Below are positions 1-63,729 of a stretch of 64,000 nucleotides of DNA, piece by piece. A model generated the notes under the pieces. It saw only the letters and a list, made by a program, of their open reading frames with translations, made no database searches and was not told where the DNA came from. A program made the position numbers and the translations under genes. The DNA comes from Mytilus californianus. Lineage: Eukaryota. The stretch is taken from the NCBI RefSeq assembly GCF_021869535.1, contig NW_026262581.1:82894001-82958000 (forward strand), written 5' to 3'. Each line of letters begins with the position of its first letter. The stretch's first letter is position 1.

Positions 1-425
1 TTCTATATTCATATGTGATTTAATCATTATATAGTGATATAAGTCTGATATCAGACGGGGAGTGTGTTGCCTTGGATTCCCTAATTTATCTATATATTTT
101 GTGTAATTATATTCAATAATTAACGATTAGTTTATATTTTTCCGGAGTTAAATCTGGACTTCACCTAACAACATTCTATTGTTACCGTAGCCTCGCATCT
201 GTCTTTTGCAAATCAACATTGTGTTGTTTGTCTTTGTTTGTATGTCTATTGTCCTGTGTTGGTGTGGTCTGTTCAATATATTTGGTAATTTATATTACCC
301 TTTTTTTGTATTAGACTCGTAATAGGTCTACAATTAATCGGTCTAATAGCTGTTTCCAGCAGAGAACATGCCACTATCCCTCAACCTGTCTATGAGTGGC
401 CGTTCATGTCAAAATAGCGATGGTT

Positions 426-600
426 CCATCTAGATGCATTTTCCATCTAGATACTTCGCATAACCATCTAGATGCTTCGCACAAGTATCTAAATAGTTCG
501 TGTTAGTATCTAGATGCTTCGTTAAAGTATCTAGATGCTTCGTTGAAGTATCTAGATGCTTCGCTGAAGTATCTAGATGCTTCGTTAAAGTATCTAGATG
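426..600 (+). repeat. Left subterminal 21-bp tandem array with palindromic TCTAGA core
   Basis: Core at 429, then 446, 467, 488 (TCTAAA), 509, 530, 551, 572, 593 (exact 21-bp period). Unit approx. GCTTCGTTAAAGTATCTAGAT. Confidence 0.95.
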
Positions 601-752
601 GCCGAAAAGTCTTAAAATCTTTAGTATTCTGTCGTATTCTAACCAATTGAATTTGCGTTTTCTTACTCTACTGATTAACAAATTTCGCGGGATTTTAGAG
701 AGGGAAACACGTAGTTTCTCTCCCCGTGAGCTTTATTCCCCGCACAGCTGAT

Positions 753-856
753 ATGTCGAATCTTGAAAGATACCAACAATTGTTGAGAAGAAGCTTAATT
801 AGAATTAGAGAAAGGACAGAGGAAGAAAATGGTGACGATAACGACTTTGTAACAGG
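753..856 (+). other. Candidate first coding exon inside the TIR element (MSNLERYQQLLRRSLIRIRERTEEENGDDNDFVTG)
   Basis: ATG at 753 downstream of a CCAAT box (~642). Open for 34 codons plus 2 nt, then a GTAATA donor at 857. No downstream exons found. Confidence 0.4.
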
Positions 857-1133
857 GTAATAAATATTTTATTTCATCTCTAGTGTTTTAGCAGACTATT
901 TTCGTTGCCGTAGGATCTATGACTTTGTCAACTCGTACCAGATTATTAATACATGTACCTCGTACTTTTACCAAACCGTACTTCTACAAACTCAAACCTA
1001 ATTTTTAGATATTATTATAACATGAAGCATAGTAGTTATCTCCGATCGTATAAAATAAAAAAATATCAAATATCAAAACGAACAAATGAAACATCATGAA
1101 CATGACAACCAAAAGAAATCCCATCCACTTTTA

Positions 1134-1404
1134 GGGAGCTACCATTTGATTTTTATGGGGGCTAGGATGAAATATTTAGTGACTAAATTTTGTCCTGCAT
1201 TTTTTTATTAGTTGTAATCTCTGTCCTGCCTTTTTATCTTTCACTCTATTCAGTCCTGTCTTTTTTTATTAGTGTTTCCTGACTTTTTTTACATAAATTG
1301 TCATCCTGCCTTTTTTTTTTGGCAAAGTGTCTCATCCTGCCTTTTTTTTTACTCAAAACTCCTGTCCTGTCTACTTTCCCCATAAAAATCAAATGGTAGC
1401 TCCC
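1134..1404. mobile_element. PIF/Harbinger-type MITE (27-bp TIR, TTA TSD)
   Basis: GGGAGCTACCATTTGATTTTTATGGGG (1134-1160) is inverted at 1378-1404. TTA at 1131-1133 and 1405-1407. Internal TCCTGCC-T-run repeats. Confidence 0.85.
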
Positions 1405-1411
1405 TTACTAC

Positions 1412-2060
1412 AACATGCATGGCATGTATGGGCACATCTTAGAATCAGTAAAACATGCAAAATATTAAGGTATCACAATCTTTTCAGATCTAAAATGGAA
1501 CACCCACATCAAACAAACAGCCGCTTAAAAGCAAATAAATCTTTATGTTTTATCAGACGAAATCTTAAAGTCCAGTGACATACAATTAAAGAAAGAGCAT
1601 ACCAAACTCTCATAAGACCCAAATTGGATACTGCTGTACTGTATGGGACCCATATTCAAAGGAAAACATACGATCTTTATAAAAAGTACAGAGACGAGCG
1701 ACAAGGTATGCATGTAACAGACATCACAAGACCAGTAGTGTGTCTGAGATGCTAGACACCATGAAATGGCAAACATTACAAGAACGCTGACTAAGAACAA
1801 GGCTAATAATGTTCCACAAAATTATACACGAAAAGATTGCCATTCCATCGCAGAATTTATTACAGCAGAGTCAGTCCAATACAAGATCCACCAATAAAGA
1901 TGCTTACCGACAAATCCAATGTAACAAAGACAGCTACAAATTTTCCTCAGACATAACAAAAAACACCACTACAGAAACCTTCAATGGTGCACTCACTTAC
2001 GATGTGCTCCTTGAAACCTATCCACACCTGAGTAATCAGGCAATCATGTTTTTATCTTAA
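1412..2060 (+). mobile_element. 5'-truncated, decayed CR1/L2-type non-LTR retrotransposon 3' end
   Basis: Cross-frame translation gives HILESVKHAKY*GITIFSDLKWNTHIKQTA..KANKSLCFIRRNLK and ..TVWDPY..KVQRRA..MKWQTLQER..RLIMFHKII, typical post-RT motifs. A-rich tail at ~2060-2100. Confidence 0.8.
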
Positions 2061-2210
2061 ATTAAAAATAAAATAAAAAATGAAATACAAGAAAAAATAT
2101 TAGAGAAATTTACATGAAAGTGCATGAATTCAAAAGCTGTAATATGATATTACCATAACAACACACATTTTTAAGTATGGAGTATTGTATTATAGTTTTA
2201 TATTTGTTAC

Positions 2211-2329
2211 CTTAATTTCAAATTGTCAATGATCTGTGGTGTCAGCGAATCTGAAGATCCTAAACGTGCACAGTAATCTATAGTTGATTGTACCTGTCGC
2301 AAAAAACGTTCCTTGTCCGATTCGGCCAT
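2211..2329 (-). other. Candidate first coding exon of a second, convergent gene in the TIR element (MAESDKERFLRQVQSTIDYCARLGSSDSLTPQIIDNLKL)
   Basis: AAGATGGCC start context at 2329. CCAAT upstream on the - strand (~2408-2412). GTAACA donor at 2210 (phase 2). Confidence 0.45.
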
Positions 2330-2429
2330 CTTAAATATTTCTGTTATTACTTTGTTTAGAAAAAACCGCAGAATCATGCAGAAATTTCCATTGTTAAGTG
2401 GTTTTTGATTGGTCAGTACAACTCCCAAA

Positions 2430-2995
2430 AGTATCTAGATACTTAAAAGCAAATTGAAAAGTATTTGTATTCAGTTTAACTATTTCCATCTAGATAGTTA
2501 GTCATAGTAACTGGATGCTTCTTTAAACTATCTAGATATTTGTGCGAAGCATCTAGATACTTGTGCGAAGCATCTAGATACTTGTGCGAAGCATCTAGAT
2601 ACTTGTGCGAAGCATCTAGATACTTGTACAAAGCATCTAGATACTTTAACGAAGCATCTAGATACTTGTACGAAGCATCTAGATACTTGTAGGAAACATC
2701 TAGATACTTGTGAGAAGCATCTAGATACTTGTAGGAAGCATCTAGGTACTTGTGCGAAGCATCTAGATAACTTGTGAGAACCATCTAGATACTAATTAAA
2801 AGTAACTAGATGCTTTCAAGTAGTATCTAGATGGAAAAAGGTATCTAGATAGTTCGCTAAAGTATCTAGATGTATCTTACAACCATCTAGATACTTATAC
2901 GAAGCATCTAGATACTTGTTGAAAGTATCTAGATGCTTGTTGAAAGTATCTAGATGCTTTCAACAAGTATCTAGATGGAAACACCAACTAGATGA
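2430..2995 (-). repeat. Right subterminal 21-bp TCTAGA array (~24 cores)
   Basis: Cores every 21 bp from 2531 to 2762 (unit GCATCTAGATACTTGTGCGAA, the reverse complement of the left unit), continuing to ~2990. Confidence 0.95.
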
Positions 2996-3696
2996 AACCA
3001 TCGCTATTTTGACATGAACGGCCACTCATACCTGTCAGGTCAGGTATGGTTAGATGAGTTATGGAAGTGACACTCAACATAGTTTGTTAAAATACTATCA
3101 GACTTAGTACTGAACGTTTTACTTACGCGTCTGGCGTATCAAATTATAAGCCTGGTACCTTTGATAACTAATTACTTACATTCAACTTGCTTTTATTCCA
3201 ATTCAAGACATTTCCAAAAGAATATATACATATACTATTTAAACCTTACACAAATCAAAATAGATGTTTAGTAATAAAAACATCAATAAAACTCCCTAAA
3301 TATAGATGTTTAATAATAGAAACATTAATGAAACTCCCCAAATATTTCACGCTGCAGTAATCAGGTTTTTAAATGTAAAATCCTTCACATATTTTGATTG
3401 TTATAGCTACCCACAGGTAGATATGAAGTTATGTTGACATCAACTTATATTTAACTATAGAGCTATATCATGTATATGCGACGCAGAGAATGTAGTTATT
3501 ATATAATAATGCAGTAGGATGTCACTTGATTATCTTGAGAAGACATATCCTTTCATCATTATACATAATCCGGAGGTCTTGACAACAGAAAAATCGTTTA
3601 ACATATTAATTTAATTGCTTTATTCGTTTTCTTAGACCGTCTTGTTAATACTAGTAGTACTCTCCCCTCCCCATCGACTTTCTAAATTATTTGCTA

Positions 3697-9274: not shown

Positions 9275-11360
9275 ATGGCTGCAATTGAACCTAATCCATG
9301 GTTCCGGGTTCTCCCACCAGAGCCAATACACCTTATCGCTATTTGTCCGCCATTACTGGACATCACACAAGTTCCCGTAAAATTTTGACGTCATAATAGA
9401 AAATATCTGACGCCACAATGGAAAAGTGATTGTTGTATGACGTCAAAAGTTCGAGCGGGACTGATTCTCGGGTCAAGCGGGATTAGCGATAATGTGTATG
9501 AATGACCCACCGTTTAATAGAGCACCCACTGGACCCATTAATATGCCGCCCAGAGATGCCGCGCCGATAGCCTACTTTTATTTGCTGTTTTCTATTGACC
9601 TCATCAAAGAGTTTGTCAAACAAACAAACAGGTTGGTAAAATAATCTTTTCTGAGTTAGTTTATAGTTACTAGACGTATCTTTCATAGCCATATTGCAAT
9701 TTTTTACCATCAATATAGAACCAACGCGCCGTTGAAATGTTAATGACACAGTCAATAAAATAATCAACAAAGTCATACAATTTAAATCTTTGTGATTACA
9801 AGTTGTTTCATTTTATGACATTGTTCTTTCTAAAACATAATTTAGAAATTTTTTGAACACTTTTATATCCACCTGCTGAAATGGTATGTGTAGACCGGTC
9901 AAGATAATAGAAAGACAGCCTAACACGACTGTTTGTTCGTTCAGCTCAATAAAGAAATGAACATTATGTTTTTCTGTGGTTGCGTTGCAGCTTGCTGAGA
10001 TACAGGGGAAGCGCCCCAATGACAGGATATAAAATATCACAAAAGCACGTGTAACTCAAAAGAAACGGTTATTCGGGCAGTATACGAAAACAAAACATTA
10101 AAAAGAACGGATATAAGTTACTGGCACGAAGACATCAACAAATCACCAAATACAAAAACAAATGAAGAAAATAAAAATAACCCCACTTAATCACCACCAC
10201 CAAAAAATATACATTTTCAAAGTATTATGGTCGTTCCCTTAAAAACATAGATATTTACATAAAAGATTCTACGACTTTATATAATAGATGTATATGATTA
10301 TTTTTGAATTTTTTTGTAGATATGCAAAGAATCTTTGTAATGAAACCATTCGCCAAACCAGTCGATTTTCGAGAAAAATGCAGTGGCAGAAGGAGGGTAA
10401 ACTGACCATACCTGAGTTTAAGGGATTCCTTGCCGTTTTTTATAACATGGGCTTAATTAGGAAAGTATCATTTGAAGAATATTGGAATAAGCACAGTCCA
10501 TCTCAGTCTACACCCTGGTTCCGTTGTATGTTTAGTCGAAACAGATTCCAAAACATCTTAAAATTTTTGCACCTGGTGGACACCAAAAAACTCCCTAAGC
10601 GTAATGATCCTGCTTACAAACCATCTCAAAGGTTCAAACCGTTACTTGATTTCGTTAACAGGAAATTTTTACGGTATTATAATCCCCGCAGAGAACTTGC
10701 TGTAGATGAATCCCTTGTTGGTACAAAAGGAAAGACAAGTATGTTACAGTATATACCAAGTAAACGTTCAAGGTTTGGCGTTAAATTCTGGATGTTGGTC
10801 GAGTCCGTCACCGGGTATGTTTTACAGATGGATGTATATCACGGGAAACGTTTCGATCACACTCCTGCTGGAACATTACAAGGAACAAATGTAGTAATAA
10901 ATTTAATGAAGAATTCGCATCTTCTTGGGAAAGGCTTTCATGTTTTCGCCGATAGCTTTTTTGCTTCACTTAATTTAGCTAACAAATTATTGAGAGAGCG
11001 TACGTATCTCACAGGCACAATGAGAACAAATAGACCTATGCCACAGATGATAAAAAATGCACGTCCGCAGGCAGGGAATGCTGTTTACGCTAGACAAAGA
11101 CAAATCATGCTTTGCCGTTTCCGCGACCACAACAGAAAAAAACCCGTCACATTGGTGTCTACTTACTACAATGCTATTGATACACTAAACGGTTAACCTA
11201 GGATCATAGGCGCGTATAATACATTTATGGGCGGTGTCGACCTTAGCGACCAATTGATTGGCGCATATAATGATCACAGGAAATGCAGTAAAGTATGGAA
11301 AAAAATTATATATCACATATTTCATCGCATTATGTTAAACGCGTATATGCTACTCAAAGT
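9275..11360 (+). pseudogene. Intron-containing piggyBac (DDE_Tnp_1_7 / PGBD4-like) transposase pseudogene: join(9275-9327, 9500-9631, 10320-~11360)
   Basis: MAAIEPNPWFRVLPPEPM-NDPPFNRAPTGPINMPPRDAAPIAYFYLLFSIDLIKEFVKQTNR|YAKNL... GT-AG intron 9632-10319. Catalytic motifs AVDESLV, FADSFF and MGGVDLSDQ. TAA at 11194-11196 precedes the third Asp. C-terminal Cys-rich domain missing. Confidence 0.85.
9328..9497. mobile_element. 170-bp MITE inserted in piggyBac exon 1
   Basis: TIR ACACCTTATCGCTA / TAGCGATAATGTGT (1 mismatch). Removing it with one AT copy restores the transposase frame. Confidence 0.8.
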
Positions 11361-22190: not shown

Positions 22191-25100
22191 GTAAGGTATG
22201 TGTGCTTTTTTATGGTAAAAAAATTACTATCTAAAGCATTTTTATGTACATTGTTATTTTAAAAAAGATTTATGTCGTTTTCCCAGTTTGAAAATATATT
22301 ATAAAATATTCAATCCTTCATTCGTTTTATCTTGACCAGTTGAACAAGAAAAAAAGTACGAAGAAAAGCGCGCAATACAATCAGTTAAAAACAAGAATGT
22401 GTCCATAGTACACGGATGCCTCACTCGCACTATCAATTTTTATGTTCAGTGGACCGGGTCAAAACTATAATTTGGCATTAAAATTAGAAAGATCATATCA
22501 TAGATCATATGATTGGACTTCAACTTCATCAAAAACTACCTTGACCAAAAAATTTATCATTAAGCGGGACAGACGGACGGACGGACGAACGGACGAACGA
22601 ACGGACGCACAGACCGAAAAACATAATGCCCCTACGTGGGGCATAAAAACCGCCCAACTTATTTCAATGATATCGGTATCAGAGCTGAAAGTTTACTCCA
22701 AGTTCTCTATCTGCCGTTATAGAATGTCTTCTGAAATTAACTGGGTTTTTTAATATACGACACATCAGCGTATTTGTGAGAATTCTTTTAAGTTGTCATT
22801 GAGATTCAAGTTCCTAAATGTTACAATACTCCACTTTCAATATTTACTGGTATAATTGAGAAAGGAAAATGTGACGTCTCTAGCATATATAAAACTTTAC
22901 CCCCATTTGGCAGCAATTTTCTCCTGAAAAATATAATTTTAATTTTGGCAAAAAACTTATAATGTCCTAATATGCGGACAGATTTGAAAGGAAGTAAAAT
23001 GCTAAACCGTCTATCGACCTGCCATAATTTTTTGTTTGTTTGCTAAGTAACATTTCTTGGTTGTGTCGATGAACTATTATTTATACTATGTACGTATGCG
23101 ACTTTCACGTCATATTCCCTTCCGGCGCCCACGGTTTTATCCCAATTATATTCTCTTGGATGTTCTATATGCCTAGTCTTCAATTTTCTGTGCAATGTTT
23201 TTTTTAAAAACATTTTTAACGAATTTTGCTCCAATGTTCCTATGTTTAATAGTCGTGCTACTGTCTGTCCTTAAACTTACAATTTTTAATTGTGATGTTA
23301 GTATTATTATTTCCCTGCTTTCCCAGCAGATAAACATTGTACACAATGAAGTAAAATTGATATCGTGACATGATATTAACTGAAATAAATCATTATGAAT
23401 TAAGTCTACAGCGAAACGGGTTATAATTAATACTGCAAGTACTCAGTATTTAACCCAGAAACCAGCAGACGACTCTGTTTCAATATTCAGACATTTAATT
23501 AGGTTAAGAAGACATTTGTTTGCCATTTATACCGTGCTTTACGCCATTCTTAAGTCACGTTACTACTGTTATGCATTCAATTATTACAAAATTGAATAAC
23601 ATTTTATTGAGCCCCATATGGTTAAATAGATTGGTTAACCGGGAGAGATTTCTAACAAATGGAGTATATACAGTCGTAAAGTTAATAAAGAGGATCGATG
23701 ATTTAATAAGATACTAAAAAGGAAGGATGATATAGGAAATCTATTATGTGCAATTACAATCAAAAGGACATTAATGTTTATTATAGTGGAGTGAAATATC
23801 CCGGGTTATAATGAAATTTGATAGGTTAACCTGGCAGGAGGATATGAGCAATGTCCTGGTAGTTAATGTTGAAATCAGGACACTCCAGTATAATATAATT
23901 ATCATTCGGGATCTTTTCAGGTTCAATTTCCCCTGTCTGTGTCATGTATAAAACACGTATTAAACACGAACATGGGAATATGAACCCAAATTCCCCTATG
24001 AAGATCACGAATAGCATAATAATATGATAAACAAGAAAAAGGAGCATTATGTGTCGCGATATCATTACATGAAAGGGAAAAAATGGTTAGGTCGCAGGCT
24101 TTGTATGTATTTAGGATGGGTAACTCAAATTCAATGGATGTTAACCCCAAGGGTGACTGGGTAAAGAAATATTGTCATCTAATGGTCTTCTTCCGACCGG
24201 CAGTAAAAAACCTTGCCAATGTGGGGTGTCCGTTTGGCTGTGAGTGATGTACAAATTCGCATGTGTAGATCTACTTAATTAAAAAAAAAAGAACAGCTTT
24301 CCATTTTCTGTAATAATAATCTATTTTATTATTGTGTCACATATTGATTGACATACATATATTGCTGTAATGCAATCAGTAATGTCAGATTCCCAAGTTT
24401 CTATTAAGCAATGTGTAAATTAGGTATCAGACAAAATTTAAGGAAGCTAGGCTGAGCTCTGCACTATAAGACCTATTTTAATTCTAATTTTCAGAAAAAT
24501 AAAGTGAATTCGTTTTGTGCTAAACTAGTAGTATGTATTATTTTTTTAAATACAATAGTGAGTACTGAACATAAATCTGAGAGATGGAGTTCAGTTTTCA
24601 AACAGTTTGATTGTTTCATATATACATACAGATTATATTAAAAGTTATCATACATAATCCTGGCACAGAATGGCATATATTTTGGCACAACAATAATTCT
24701 TGGCCTTTTTCAAAATAAGATAAAACATTATTGCCTTTTATTGACTACGCTATGGGTTTTGCTCATTGTTGAAGGCCGTAGGTGAACTATAGTTTCATAC
24801 ATCCACGTTATTTGTACTCTGGTAGATGATTGTCTTAATGGCAATCATATTACATCTTATTACTTTACATTCAAATCGACTTCTGTTGCTCAAATCGGAG
24901 TCGAATCTGCCGTCATGATAACACAAGATTCCAAATCGAGAGTCTGTCCTGATCCTTGCTGATGAAGTCTTTTTCGCATCAAAGTCTAATTCCTGGCGTC
25001 TCTAATCGACATCCTTTTTTCTGGTCGTAGCGAAGTGAAAAAGTTGTGACAAATCAAATTGATATTTTTTTAAAAGATTTCTTGAATTTTGTCTAAAAAT

Positions 25101-36730: not shown

Positions 36731-38632
36731 ATGGCGCTTTCTAATATAGTGTTGGAAAATTTAACAGATTGTCCTATATGCAATGAAAAATTCAACCTGC
36801 CCAGATTTTTACCGTGTTATCACACATATTGCCAACATTGTTTGAAGGATTATATCGAGTCTGAAATTGAGAAACACGGAAAAAGCTTAAGCAAGATAAA
36901 ATGCGTAGTCTGCCAGAGTGTTTTTCCGCTCATTCCCGACACGGAGCCGGAGAAGTATGTTGCAGAACTCCCAATGGATAACCTAGCTCTAAGCATTATA
37001 AAACGGAAGGAAGTTGGTGATTCAGAAAATATCTGCTATCCGTGTAAACGAATAGACATTACCAGTCCAGCTGTATGCTACTGTTCGAAATGCGTAGAGT
37101 TTCTATGCAAAGATTGTGAAAAATACCACAAAACCAATAAATCGACATCCAACCATTTATTGGTCAGCATAGCAAAGATTGTGAAGGAAACAGATCTGTT
37201 AAAACATGCTCCACCGGTTATCTGTCCAGAACATCGAGAAAGTGAGATGGCGATGTACTGTTTTTCGCACGAAGTTGTCTGCTGTTCATCTTGCGTTTCA
37301 GAGCATCATTCTCAGTGCAAAACGGTTGCAACAGTTGAACATGCAGTTGCTAGATTTAAAGAAAAACGCATGTTCGAGGCGTTTAATAAAAACTTGCAAA
37401 AGTCGAAATTGAAGTATGAAGAAGAGATTAAGAAAGGAACCGAACATCTAGGACAATTAGATCACAGTGCATCTTTTATATGTGCAGAAATTGAAGAAAT
37501 GCGCAAAATGATTAACAAACACTTCGATGACCTCGAGGTCAGTGCTAAGAAGCAGTTAGTAAGCATCAAAAATGAACAGACGGCTGAATTAGAAGATAGA
37601 ATCGATGAATTTAGAATGAGAAGCTTAATGTTGGAAGATAGTGAACAGGTTTTGAAAGCTTTTGTACAAAATGCATCTCCAGGGCTACTTTTATTTGAAA
37701 TGAAGCGATTGAAAAATCAGCACATGGAATGTGAAAAATTTATACATCAATCCAAAACTCTTCTAGCGAAACGGCTGCTCGGTTTTGAACCCGACAAAAA
37801 CGTTGCAGGAATTACGTCAAGTCTAAAACATATGGGTAAAGTTTTTGTCAAGGGTGTTTTTGATGTAACTCGAGACGTACCCAAGAACACAATGACTTTG
37901 AAGACAAAACGGAAGAACGCAAGAATCACAGGAATCTCATCTTTCCCTGATGGACGAATAGTCGTAACTGATGAAAATAACTGTACGCTTACTCTATTTG
38001 ACGGAGAAGGCAAGGAGGTTAATGAACTGGTTCTTCTTGGAAAGCCATGGGATGTGGCAACACTGGACCGACACCGATGTGTCATTACGATGCGAGGCCT
38101 AAACGTTTTACAATATGTCAATGTCAATGACATGACACTTTTACGTCAAATTGCAATCGATGATGGCTGCTGGGGCGTTTCCGTTTACGGTGAAGAATTA
38201 GTTATAGGATTCGACAATAAAGTAGAAATTTTCGATTTCGGTGGAAGATCTGAACATGTCATTCCATGCTTAGGATCAGACTATTATGTAACCATAGACA
38301 ACTTAGGGAGGTTTTACCACAAGCATCATGGGAACACACTTCACTGTCGACATGTCTCTGGAAAATTCGCGTTTAGTTATTATAATGCGGAATTGGTTAA
38401 TCTTACAGGAATTACAATTGACAATGATGGAAATATATACGTTGCTGGGTTTCATTCCAACAATGTTCACCAACTTACACCAGATGGCACCCTAACGCGG
38501 ATCATATTATCCGGCATGGACGGTATATATCAACCCCTTAAACTTCACTTCTCCAAAGATTTCAGCAAACTTCTTGTGGCAAACAATAATGGCTCATCTG
38601 TTGCCGTATACAGCTTCACAAACATATCATGA
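36731..38632 (+). CDS. Intronless TRIM-family E3 ligase (RING, B-box1, B-box2, coiled coil, NHL-like beta-propeller), 633 aa
   Basis: C3HC4 RING CPIC..LPCYHTYCQHC..CVVC; B-boxes CYPC..CSKCVEFLCKDCEKYH..H and CPEH..YCFSHEVVCCSSC..H..C; C-terminal GITIDNDGNIYV..NNVHQLTPDG repeats. Confidence 0.95.
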   Translation: MALSNIVLENLTDCPICNEKFNLPRFLPCYHTYCQHCLKDYIESEIEKHGKSLSKIKCVVCQSVFPLIPDTEPEKYVAELPMDNLALSIIKRKEVGDSENICYPCKRIDITSPAVCYCSKCVEFLCKDCEKYHKTNKSTSNHLLVSIAKIVKETDLLKHAPPVICPEHRESEMAMYCFSHEVVCCSSCVSEHHSQCKTVATVEHAVARFKEKRMFEAFNKNLQKSKLKYEEEIKKGTEHLGQLDHSASFICAEIEEMRKMINKHFDDLEVSAKKQLVSIKNEQTAELEDRIDEFRMRSLMLEDSEQVLKAFVQNASPGLLLFEMKRLKNQHMECEKFIHQSKTLLAKRLLGFEPDKNVAGITSSLKHMGKVFVKGVFDVTRDVPKNTMTLKTKRKNARITGISSFPDGRIVVTDENNCTLTLFDGEGKEVNELVLLGKPWDVATLDRHRCVITMRGLNVLQYVNVNDMTLLRQIAIDDGCWGVSVYGEELVIGFDNKVEIFDFGGRSEHVIPCLGSDYYVTIDNLGRFYHKHHGNTLHCRHVSGKFAFSYYNAELVNLTGITIDNDGNIYVAGFHSNNVHQLTPDGTLTRIILSGMDGIYQPLKLHFSKDFSKLLVANNNGSSVAVYSFTNIS

Positions 38633-62665: not shown

Positions 62666-63729
62666 AAAAGAGGGACGAAAGATACCAGAGGGACAGTCAA
62701 ACTCATAGATCGAAAACAAACTGACAACGCCATGGCCAAAAATAAAAAGACAAACAGACAAATAATAGTACAGATGACACAACATAGAAAACTAAAGACT
62801 AAGCAACACGAACCCCACCAAAAACTGGGGATGATCTCAGGTGCTCCGGAAGGGTAAGCAGATCCTGCTCCACATGTGGCACCCGTCGTGTTGCTTATGT
62901 TATTACAAATCCGGTAAATAGTCTAACTCGGTAGGTCACATTCATGAGAAGGGAAGGGTTATGTAGTTACGACATAAGGAACATATCCGAAATCATCTGT
63001 GAAACGGTTATTCCATAACGGTCAACCAACTCGTGATGGCGTCCGTAAAATTTACGAAGGGATGATTTCAACTTCACCATTCGGAACTCTTGGTTTAATA
63101 GCTTCCTTGTGAGCAGTAATCCTCTATCAAGGAAATCATGATAGGAAATACAAGCCCGGGAATATCGTATCAATTGGGAGATATATACTCCGTATGCAGG
63201 CGCTGCTGGAATGTTGCTACATAGAAATGGAAAGTTCATAATTGGGAAGCTGAAATCATCTCTTTTGTCGTAAAGTTTTGTATTCCACCGACCCTCATTG
63301 TCAATTTCTAGATGTAAGTCAAGATATGAGGCAGACCTGACTGTATCTGTAGTATCCTTTATCTCTAGTTCGATGGGATAGATTCGTTCAACATAGTCAC
63401 CAAATTTTGTATTATTTAGTGAGAGAACATCATCTATATAGCGGAACGTAAAGTTAAAGGATATTGCTAACTTCTTATCTTTCTTCCTAAGAAGTTCCTG
63501 TATGAAGTCAGCCTCATAATAATAAAGAAACAAGTCGGCAAGAAGAGGGGCACAATTGGTTCCCATTGGAATTCCGACAGTCTGTTGAAAAACACGTCCT
63601 CCAAACGTAACAAATATGTTGTCAATCAAGAAATCAAGCATCTTGATAATGTCAGTTTCAGAGAATTTTTTGTTTGAATCAGAGTGATTCTTTACAAAGT
63701 AGGATTTATCCCTCCCCAAGACAAGATAA
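62666..63729 (-). mobile_element. Penelope-like (Naiad-type) retroelement, 5'-truncated; RT C-terminal ORF 63719-62967 intact
   Basis: GIPMGTNCAPLLADLFL, FRYIDDVLSL, TKLYDKRDDF..SNIPAAPAYGVYISQLIRY. The ORF stops right after the RT thumb with no C-terminal GIY-YIG. Confidence 0.9.

Follow-up and report, generated by a model that had tools for sequence, protein, structure and literature searches.

In the 64,000-nt stretch of Mytilus californianus DNA analysed here (contig NW_026262581.1, positions 82,894,001 to 82,958,000 of the assembly; hereafter the window), a transposon of ~2.6 kb occupies positions 391-3030. Its terminal inverted repeats (TIRs), perfect over 35 bp and broken at base 36, and the 6-bp target site duplication (TSD) CCTGTC on both flanks had been proposed in a first-pass annotation made from the letters alone, and both were confirmed. 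Beyond the 35 bp, an imperfect inverted repeat extends to 188 nt at 79%. No further copies of the 35-bp TIR were found in the 64-kb window. The left half of the element (B end) carries a CCAAT box and an ATG-started open stretch on the plus strand, and the right half (A end) carries the same features on the minus strand; both open stretches stop at a phase-2 donor, G/GTAA. All coordinates given for these features by the first-pass annotation were right (Table 1). Together with the relatives described below, these features make it probable that the element is a non-autonomous DNA transposon of the cut-and-paste type from the IS3EU/GingerRoot superfamily, derived from a two-gene parent by one deletion, with arrays of palindromes near its ends as docking sites.

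The palindromic core of these arrays, ATCTAGAT, occurs 30 times in exact form inside the element and once in the remaining 61 kb of the window, where 1.2 would be expected by chance. When one mismatch was allowed, 34 cores were found, of which 9 lie in the left array and 25 in the right, and 26 of the 31 within-array spacings were exactly 21 bp (left, 7 of 8; right, 19 of 23). Tandem Repeats Finder (TRF) returned a period of 21 at both ends. The unit consists of a 16-bp near-palindrome, AAG[T/C]ATCTAGAT[G/A]CTT, and a 5-bp spacer. Units have the same polarity when read inward from each tip, so the arrays are inverted between the ends, and the right end also has a few units of opposite polarity. 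These counts agree closely with the earlier description of ~33 cores that are almost always 21 bp apart and inverted between the ends.

One array layout was found at 10 ends of seven elements, with core 1 at nt 38 from the tip, core 2 at nt 55, and further cores in 21-bp steps; in the relative L002, which has a 1-nt deletion in the TIR, the sites lie one base closer to the tip. The number of sites per end is 16-33 at the transposase-gene end versus 8-18 at the other end, and the array of L005 is decayed. Within arrays, the eight core columns hold 1.2-2.0 bits of information, mostly 2.0, and the spacer columns hold 0.1-1.5. Between subfamilies, several spacer positions of the inner unit have changed with the core unchanged.

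The superfamily was assigned from the termini, the TSD, and the transposase type of relatives. IS3EU families always have TA..TA termini and usually a 6-bp TSD (PMC10045372), GingerRoot elements have TA..TA ends and mostly a 6-bp TSD (PMC6839031), and fungal IS3EU elements have TIRs of >30 bp ending in TAY.. and 6-bp TSDs (PMC12730594). In the mussel family, TATGAG...CTCATA termini were found in the window element, L001, and L006; the A ends of L002-L005 gave four more instances of this terminus, and the B end of L007 reads TATAAG. Six ends of four elements could be aligned from the first T of TATGAG, with the flanks outside unrelated. A 6-bp TSD was present in all three complete copies, CCTGTC in the window, CATCAC in L001, and AAGGAG in L006. 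The assignment to IS3EU from TAY..RTA ends and a 6-bp TSD was thereby borne out, and the tabulation of TSD lengths that had been suggested as a check gave 6 bp in the two further copies as well. The integrase-type transposase encoded by relatives, described next, is a further mark of these groups.

A word search with the open reading frame (ORF) around 2329-2211 returned one protein, P0001, a 117-aa M. trossulus model, and an exhaustive HMMER search with P0001 returned the M. coruscus protein P0002 (386 aa). P0002 agrees with the minus-strand exon of the window (exon A) at 39 of its first 40 residues and contains an integrase core (PF24764) at E 6e-55. In P0012 and P0014, two further M. coruscus transposases, the first 40 residues are 100% identical to the product of exon A, and P0013 from M. 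galloprovincialis is a full 520-aa transposase from five exons, with PF24764 at E 5e-85. The transposase was analysed through such annotated database proteins; its gene has five exons with a product of 477-520 aa in the longer copies, and the exon A donor is used by five gene models. The gene is apparently intact in L004 and has lost part of exon 5 in L006. Longer copies extend the minus-strand exon into a transposase gene with an rve-type integrase core, as the first-pass annotation had anticipated. Because exon 1 alone remains in the window, this copy does not itself encode a transposase.

By inspection of the alignment, the catalytic triad is DD35E. The best NCBIfam families were IS481 (1e-15) and IS3 (2e-9), both far below the curated cut-offs. 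The AlphaFold model of the transposase (pLDDT 77) contains three long N-terminal helices (residues 8-89, exons 1-2), two helix-turn-helix (HTH) regions, and an RNase-H-like core, and its Foldseek matches were retroviral intasome integrases, TnsB of CRISPR-associated transposons (CAST), and IstA. Upstream of the core, Pfam gave HTH-type matches only and the model showed helices only, with no search aimed at an HHCC zinc-binding domain. Pfam gave no match for the two window exons, the ORFs resembling a long interspersed nuclear element (LINE), or ten open frames of the 9.9-kb L001 copy. In a separate protein, P0008 (230 aa), the first ~85 residues resemble the N-terminal helical domain of the transposase and are fused to a domain like the C-terminal part of the P2X7 receptor (PF20478, E 5e-13); the helical module seems to have been reused outside transposases in this case.

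The origin of the window element was traced by comparison with L006, a complete 14,164-bp copy in M. coruscus with TIRs from 9406 and 23569. Window positions 755-2136 match L006 22477-21046 at 94-96%, with one 75-bp gap in L006 at window position 1081, and window positions 2133-2892 match L006 10187-9443. The tetranucleotide AAAG stands at the junction of the two blocks and is present on both sides in L006, the parental form, which points to a single deletion of ~10.9 kb (L006 10188-21045) as the event that made the window element. The deletion spared the two tips with their arrays, the promoter and first exon of each gene, and some intron sequence. This collinearity on both sides of AAAG upholds the earlier proposal of a deletion derivative of a two-gene convergent element. 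We considered whether window positions 1082-2132 were LINE sequence that had filled the deletion, with breakpoints at 1081 and 2133, and rejected this, as the LINE piece and a nested miniature inverted-repeat transposable element (MITE) are already present in the L006 intron; only one junction, at 2133-2136, is left.

L001 (M. trossulus, the locus of P0001) is a 9.94-kb relative with one to two mismatches in the TIR, 42 exact ATCTAGAT cores in two arrays, and the CATCAC TSD. It is a deletion derivative too, being 98% identical to L004 only up to intron 2. This match between M. trossulus and M. galloprovincialis (L001 9155-11806 vs L004 9134-11627) runs at 98% over 2.6 kb of mostly non-coding element DNA, an identity compatible with recent activity, introgression, or transfer between hybridising mussels. 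For a 101-aa open frame of L001 (16096-16398, minus strand), the other loci yielded no relatives.

Downstream of the transposase gene and on the opposite strand, exons conserved at the protein level were found in L004, L003, and L006. In L004, 1.4 kb separates the stop codon of this HECT-like gene from the end of the transposase gene; in L003, a deletion has taken away the 3' end of each gene; and in L006 the last HECT-like exon alone remains, inside the TIR-bounded copy. The convergent transposase/HECT-like pair was also found in two further families, L009 (an ENA contig) and L010 (M. trossulus, transposase 48% identical). A profile of the first HECT-like exon (L004, L003) matched the HECT domains of E6AP, Pub2, Rsp5, Itch, and NEDD4 at E values from 4e-8 to 1e-5 (E6AP, 3.8e-8), and short relatives are named HERC3-like or 'HECT domain-containing' by their sources. 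The HECT-like gene and exon B, the plus-strand exon of the window, were searched exon by exon. In such single-exon queries, the last exon, which by eye has a conserved ..NTCAL.. cysteine, gave no significant PDB or Pfam match, and sequence searches of the PDB with the C-lobe and middle exons found nothing. Judged from the profile matches, the partner gene convergent with the transposase gene is HECT-ligase-like. The two-gene convergent layout of the parent inferred in the first-pass annotation was upheld, and the uncharacterised partner protein that it suggested is not wholly uncharacterised, since it resembles HECT ligases. No paper containing both 'IS3EU' and 'HECT' was found in the literature searched.

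Exon B lies on the HECT strand and at the HECT-gene end of the element, and it is most simply the first exon of the HECT-like gene for that reason, an identification that we regard as reasonably likely. A bridge between exon B and the HECT exons was found neither by tblastx between the B-side interiors of L001, L006, L007, L004, and L003 nor by tblastn with exon-B peptides. A word search with the first HECT exon returned L008 and L009, both without the ends of the window family, and gave no bridge; the L009 sequence stops so close to the transposase gene that its termini are not covered. The window copy of exon B is intact; the L006 copy lacks the ATG, its start codon reading ATA, and the L007 copy contains a stop. 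L006 also has a 760-bp insertion with inverted ends (CATAGATGTAATAC...) at 22478-23240, exactly at the exon B start codon.

Coding constraint was assessed between the window subfamily and the L001/L004 subfamily, which are ~70% identical at the ends and lose all similarity a few bases past each donor. In exon A, 12 synonymous versus 4 non-synonymous differences were counted (ratio of non-synonymous to synonymous rates, dN/dS, 0.07; P=2e-5), with an in-frame 18-bp indel. For exon B against L001, the counts were 9.5 synonymous versus 10.5 non-synonymous (dN/dS 0.14; P=8e-4), with an in-frame 6-bp indel. On these substitution patterns, both exons are under purifying selection. The codon-level conservation across copies that had been set as a test of the element was therefore seen for both exons, between subfamilies that are ~70% identical.

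The family L010 (M. trossulus, CM071709.1, 9616-9915) provided a comparison of the arrays at greater distance. Its terminal 21 nt are identical to those of the window element, and its subterminal sites are ATACGCGT/TATACGCGTATA in place of ATCTAGAT. All 13 ATACGCGT sites lie inside 270 bp (0.1 expected by chance), the first palindrome stands at a near-equal offset from the tip, and some runs are at 21-bp steps. Identity between the transposases of the two families is 33% in the N-terminal helices, 52% and 61% in the two HTH regions, and 68% in the core. As far as sequence comparison can tell, the L010 family is a natural specificity swap, and its different palindrome supports a reading of the arrays as family-specific protein-binding sites. 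A fixed tip with a family-specific phased palindrome is the pattern expected of a catalytic recognition site combined with a putative co-evolving docking code.

We also examined whether the element had moved recently. Pieces identical to the composite element were found in DNA contigs of organism A at a summed word depth of 25-30 versus ~3 in the flank, and one organism A contig piece crosses the MITE junction. Summed word depth is a rough measure and gives no copy number, and these values suggest about ten near-identical copies in organism A. In the sister species, organism B, a contig joins 349 to 3055 without the element. The perfect TIR and TSD and the absence of the element from the matching sister-species site indicate a recent insertion.

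Table 1. Features of the transposon in the window, with coordinates, strand, and supporting observations
Feature	Position	Strand	Observation
TSD, left copy, CCTGTC	385..390		Flanks of six ends unrelated up to the base before TATGAG
TIR at B end, perfect 35 bp, starts TATGAG	391..425	+	First 21 nt common even to a family with a 48% identical transposase
B-end subterminal array, 9 palindromic cores	428..599		First core at nt 38 from tip, second at 55, then 21-bp steps
Region upstream of gene B, conserved CCAAT box 643-647	600..752	+	CCAAT block kept in the M. trossulus subfamily
Gene B exon 1 (exon B), 34 codons + 2 nt, donor G/GTAA	753..856	+	Intact; predicted first exon of the HECT-like partner gene
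Gene B intron 1 remnant with LINE fragment and nested MITE	857..2132	+	Collinear with L006 22477-21046, 94-96% identity
Nested very high-copy MITE, TTA duplication	1131..1422		In the parent lineage already
Deletion junction, AAAG microhomology	2133..2136		~10.9 kb of parent (L006 10188-21045) missing
Transposase intron 1, first 74 nt	2137..2210	-	Collinear with L005, and with L006 to 10187
Transposase exon 1 (exon A), 40 codons, donor AG/GTAAC	2211..2329	-	100% identical to P0012/P0014 N-terminus; dN/dS 0.07
Transposase promoter region, conserved CCAAT block 2412-2408	2330..2432	-	Sequence comparison
A-end subterminal array, 25 palindromic cores	2433..2993		Outer sites mixed; inner 21-bp array homogeneous
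TIR at A end, perfect 35 bp	2996..3030	-	Match to 391-425
TSD, right copy, CCTGTC	3031..3036		Identical to left copy

These observations can be combined in the following model. A parent of ~14 kb or more, whose full-length relatives contain a five-exon gene for a 520-aa DD35E transposase and a convergent multi-exon gene for a HECT-type ubiquitin-ligase-like protein, would have undergone a single 10.9-kb internal deletion at a 4-nt microhomology. What remains in the window (the two termini and subterminal arrays, and the promoter and first exon of each gene) would meet the cis requirements of transposition, and the copy would be mobilised in trans. Cleavage and strand transfer would take place at the conserved terminal 21 nt. 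The phased palindromes, spaced by two helical turns and numbering 8-33 per end, always with more at the transposase-gene end, may act as family-specific docking sites on which a row of transposase dimers, or an element-encoded partner, is loaded along one face of the DNA. The loaded arrays may then build the synaptic complex and distinguish the two ends.

Several points weigh against parts of this model. The organism B site is not a clean empty site, as 23 nt beside the TSD are also replaced. On the side of the partner gene, Pfam HECT gave no match on single exons, exon B and the main HECT exons do not occur together in any locus retrieved, and the HECT gene near L002, which comes from another lineage, may be part of a different element. 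RNA gave no splice joints at either donor of the window copy; an RNA contig reads through the exon B donor, raw RNA reads on exon B were zero, and those on exon A were at background level, as in the flank. As for the arrays, slippage can lengthen tandem repeats, and the likeness of cores inside a given array could result from homogenisation alone. The two HTH domains show fair conservation (52-61%) across families whose cores are not the same, and the binding of arrays by a dimeric element-encoded protein is something that we infer from comparison only.

The little-changed HTH domains also speak for a reader other than the transposase. If a host factor or the HECT-like partner read the arrays, this would not alter what the element is; the partner would tether ubiquitin-ligase activity to its ends, and the retention of the partner gene across families with only 48% identical transposases would fit. 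However, non-autonomous copies need only recognition by the transposase to move, the known relatives TnsB, MuA, and IstA bind repeated end sites themselves, and DNA binding by the partner has no support, so that we consider this explanation unlikely. We give a similarly low probability to the view that the arrays have no sequence-specific function and are tolerated minisatellite expansions of an ancestral subterminal site, only the terminal 35-100 bp being of importance. The inner arrays are indeed very homogeneous, which points to recent duplication, the number of units varies widely (8-33), one array is decayed, and repeat-bearing MITEs are common in bivalves. Against this stand the conservation of the core and the 21-bp register in two subfamilies with diverged spacers, the fixed outer sites at 38, 55, 76, and 97 at all 10 measured ends (shifted one base towards the tip where the TIR has its 1-nt deletion), the presence of arrays at both ends with inverted polarity, and the distant family that swapped the core for another palindrome at the same offset and with partly the same period. 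Subterminal repeat arrays and foldback-like ends are typical of the hAT, P/Galileo, CACTA, and Ginger groups, and membership in one of these would account for the arrays of the window element, yet we find it hardly credible: the 6-bp TSD in three of three copies is unlike the usual lengths of those groups, the termini are TA..TA and neither TG..CA nor CACTA, and the encoded enzyme is an integrase-core DDE protein nearest IS481/IS3. We rejected hAT, P/Foldback, CACTA, and Ginger1/2 on TSD length, termini, and transposase type, all of which mismatch.

With docking arrays of an IS3EU/GingerRoot element kept as the preferred reading, the ends can be compared with those of known systems. The transposon ends recognized by TnsB, MuA, and IstA each have several repeats that the transposase binds, and the number of repeats differs from one end to the other. 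The window family shares the transposase fold class with Tn7/CAST TnsB, Mu MuA, and IS21 IstA, as judged from the fold matches, with no sequence kinship past the fold; those ends have 2-4 non-palindromic sites, whereas here there are 8-33 palindromic sites in a strict 21-bp register. Many short subterminal repeats of inverted polarity that are retained in deletion derivatives are also found in En/Spm (CACTA), as TNPA-binding motifs, and in the ends of Drosophila Foldback/Galileo elements, but the transposase superfamilies, TSD lengths, and termini of those elements are all unlike the window element. To our knowledge, the end-site arrays of the window family are the most regular known in this fold class.

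The closest likeness is to IS3EU/GingerRoot elements, which share with the mussel family TA..TA termini, TIRs of >30 bp, a TSD of 6 bp, and a DD35E transposase akin to those of IS481 and IS3 and to integrases. The mussel family differs from them in that the published accounts examined contain no subterminal phased palindrome arrays, HECT-like partner, or mollusc families, and in that the window copy is non-autonomous. Some fungal IS3EU families have an alpha-kinase gene opposite to the transposase, and some also have TET/JBP (PMC12730594). The mussel family resembles these alpha-kinase elements in the second gene opposite to the transposase, the 6-bp TSD, and the TAY..-type ends; here, however, the partner is HECT-ligase-like, and the elements reside in an animal, have intron-rich genes, and carry long site arrays at their ends.

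Other repeats were found within and around the element. The nested MITE at 1131-1422 has a TIR (GGGAGCTACC...) with 30-nt inverted ends (GGGAGCTACCATTTG...) and TTA on both flanks. Contigs of organism A give it a summed word depth of 24,000-72,000, and those of organism B a higher one. It is also frequent in RNA libraries and probably ranks among the most abundant repeats of these genomes. It is followed at 1423-2040 (+) by the decayed remains of a LINE reverse transcriptase C-terminus (...ANKSLCFIRRNLK... motif) and an A-rich tail near 2040-2100, a fragment carried along in the transposon intron. Adjoining the element, a short repeat of extreme copy number lies at 3071-3180 (summed contig word depth, ~64,000); in organism B, 28 other letters stand in place of 97 nt (3075-3171), which indicates a separate lineage-specific insertion. 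A 42-bp tandem repeat of 2.2 copies with 85% match lies at 3256-3345, just outside the element. The window also contains long ORFs at 10288-11196 (302 aa), 36731-38632 (633 aa), and 62967-63719 (250 aa).

IS3EU/GingerRoot elements have been little studied, and no biochemistry on them was found in the searchable literature. The mussel family offers a clear handle for experiments, with a 21-nt terminus common to families, 8-33 palindromic sites per end in a strict two-turn register, and a core that differs between sister families (ATCTAGAT vs ATACGCGT). How an integrase-like transposase recognizes ends, how it tells the two ends apart, and how related families avoid cross-mobilisation would be testable with it. 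A further-reaching idea, in our view doubtful, is that the arrays form an address code particular to each family, evolving together with a reader encoded by the element around an unchanging terminal 21 nt, and that the HECT-like partner is brought there to ubiquitinate the transposase, chromatin, or repair factors. If this were true, the element would be a transposon with its own ubiquitin ligase to control or assist cut-and-paste transposition. As part of the same idea, the truncated first-exon peptides of deletion derivatives might inhibit the N-terminal helical domain. As a deletion derivative, the window copy is of an ordinary kind; the family is unusual in being IS3EU-type with a HECT-like partner and regular end-site arrays. 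A DDE transposase gene and a HECT-like ubiquitin ligase gene are lastingly paired in several lineages, and many mussel gene models named 'integrase core domain-containing' or 'HERC3-like' are parts of such elements.

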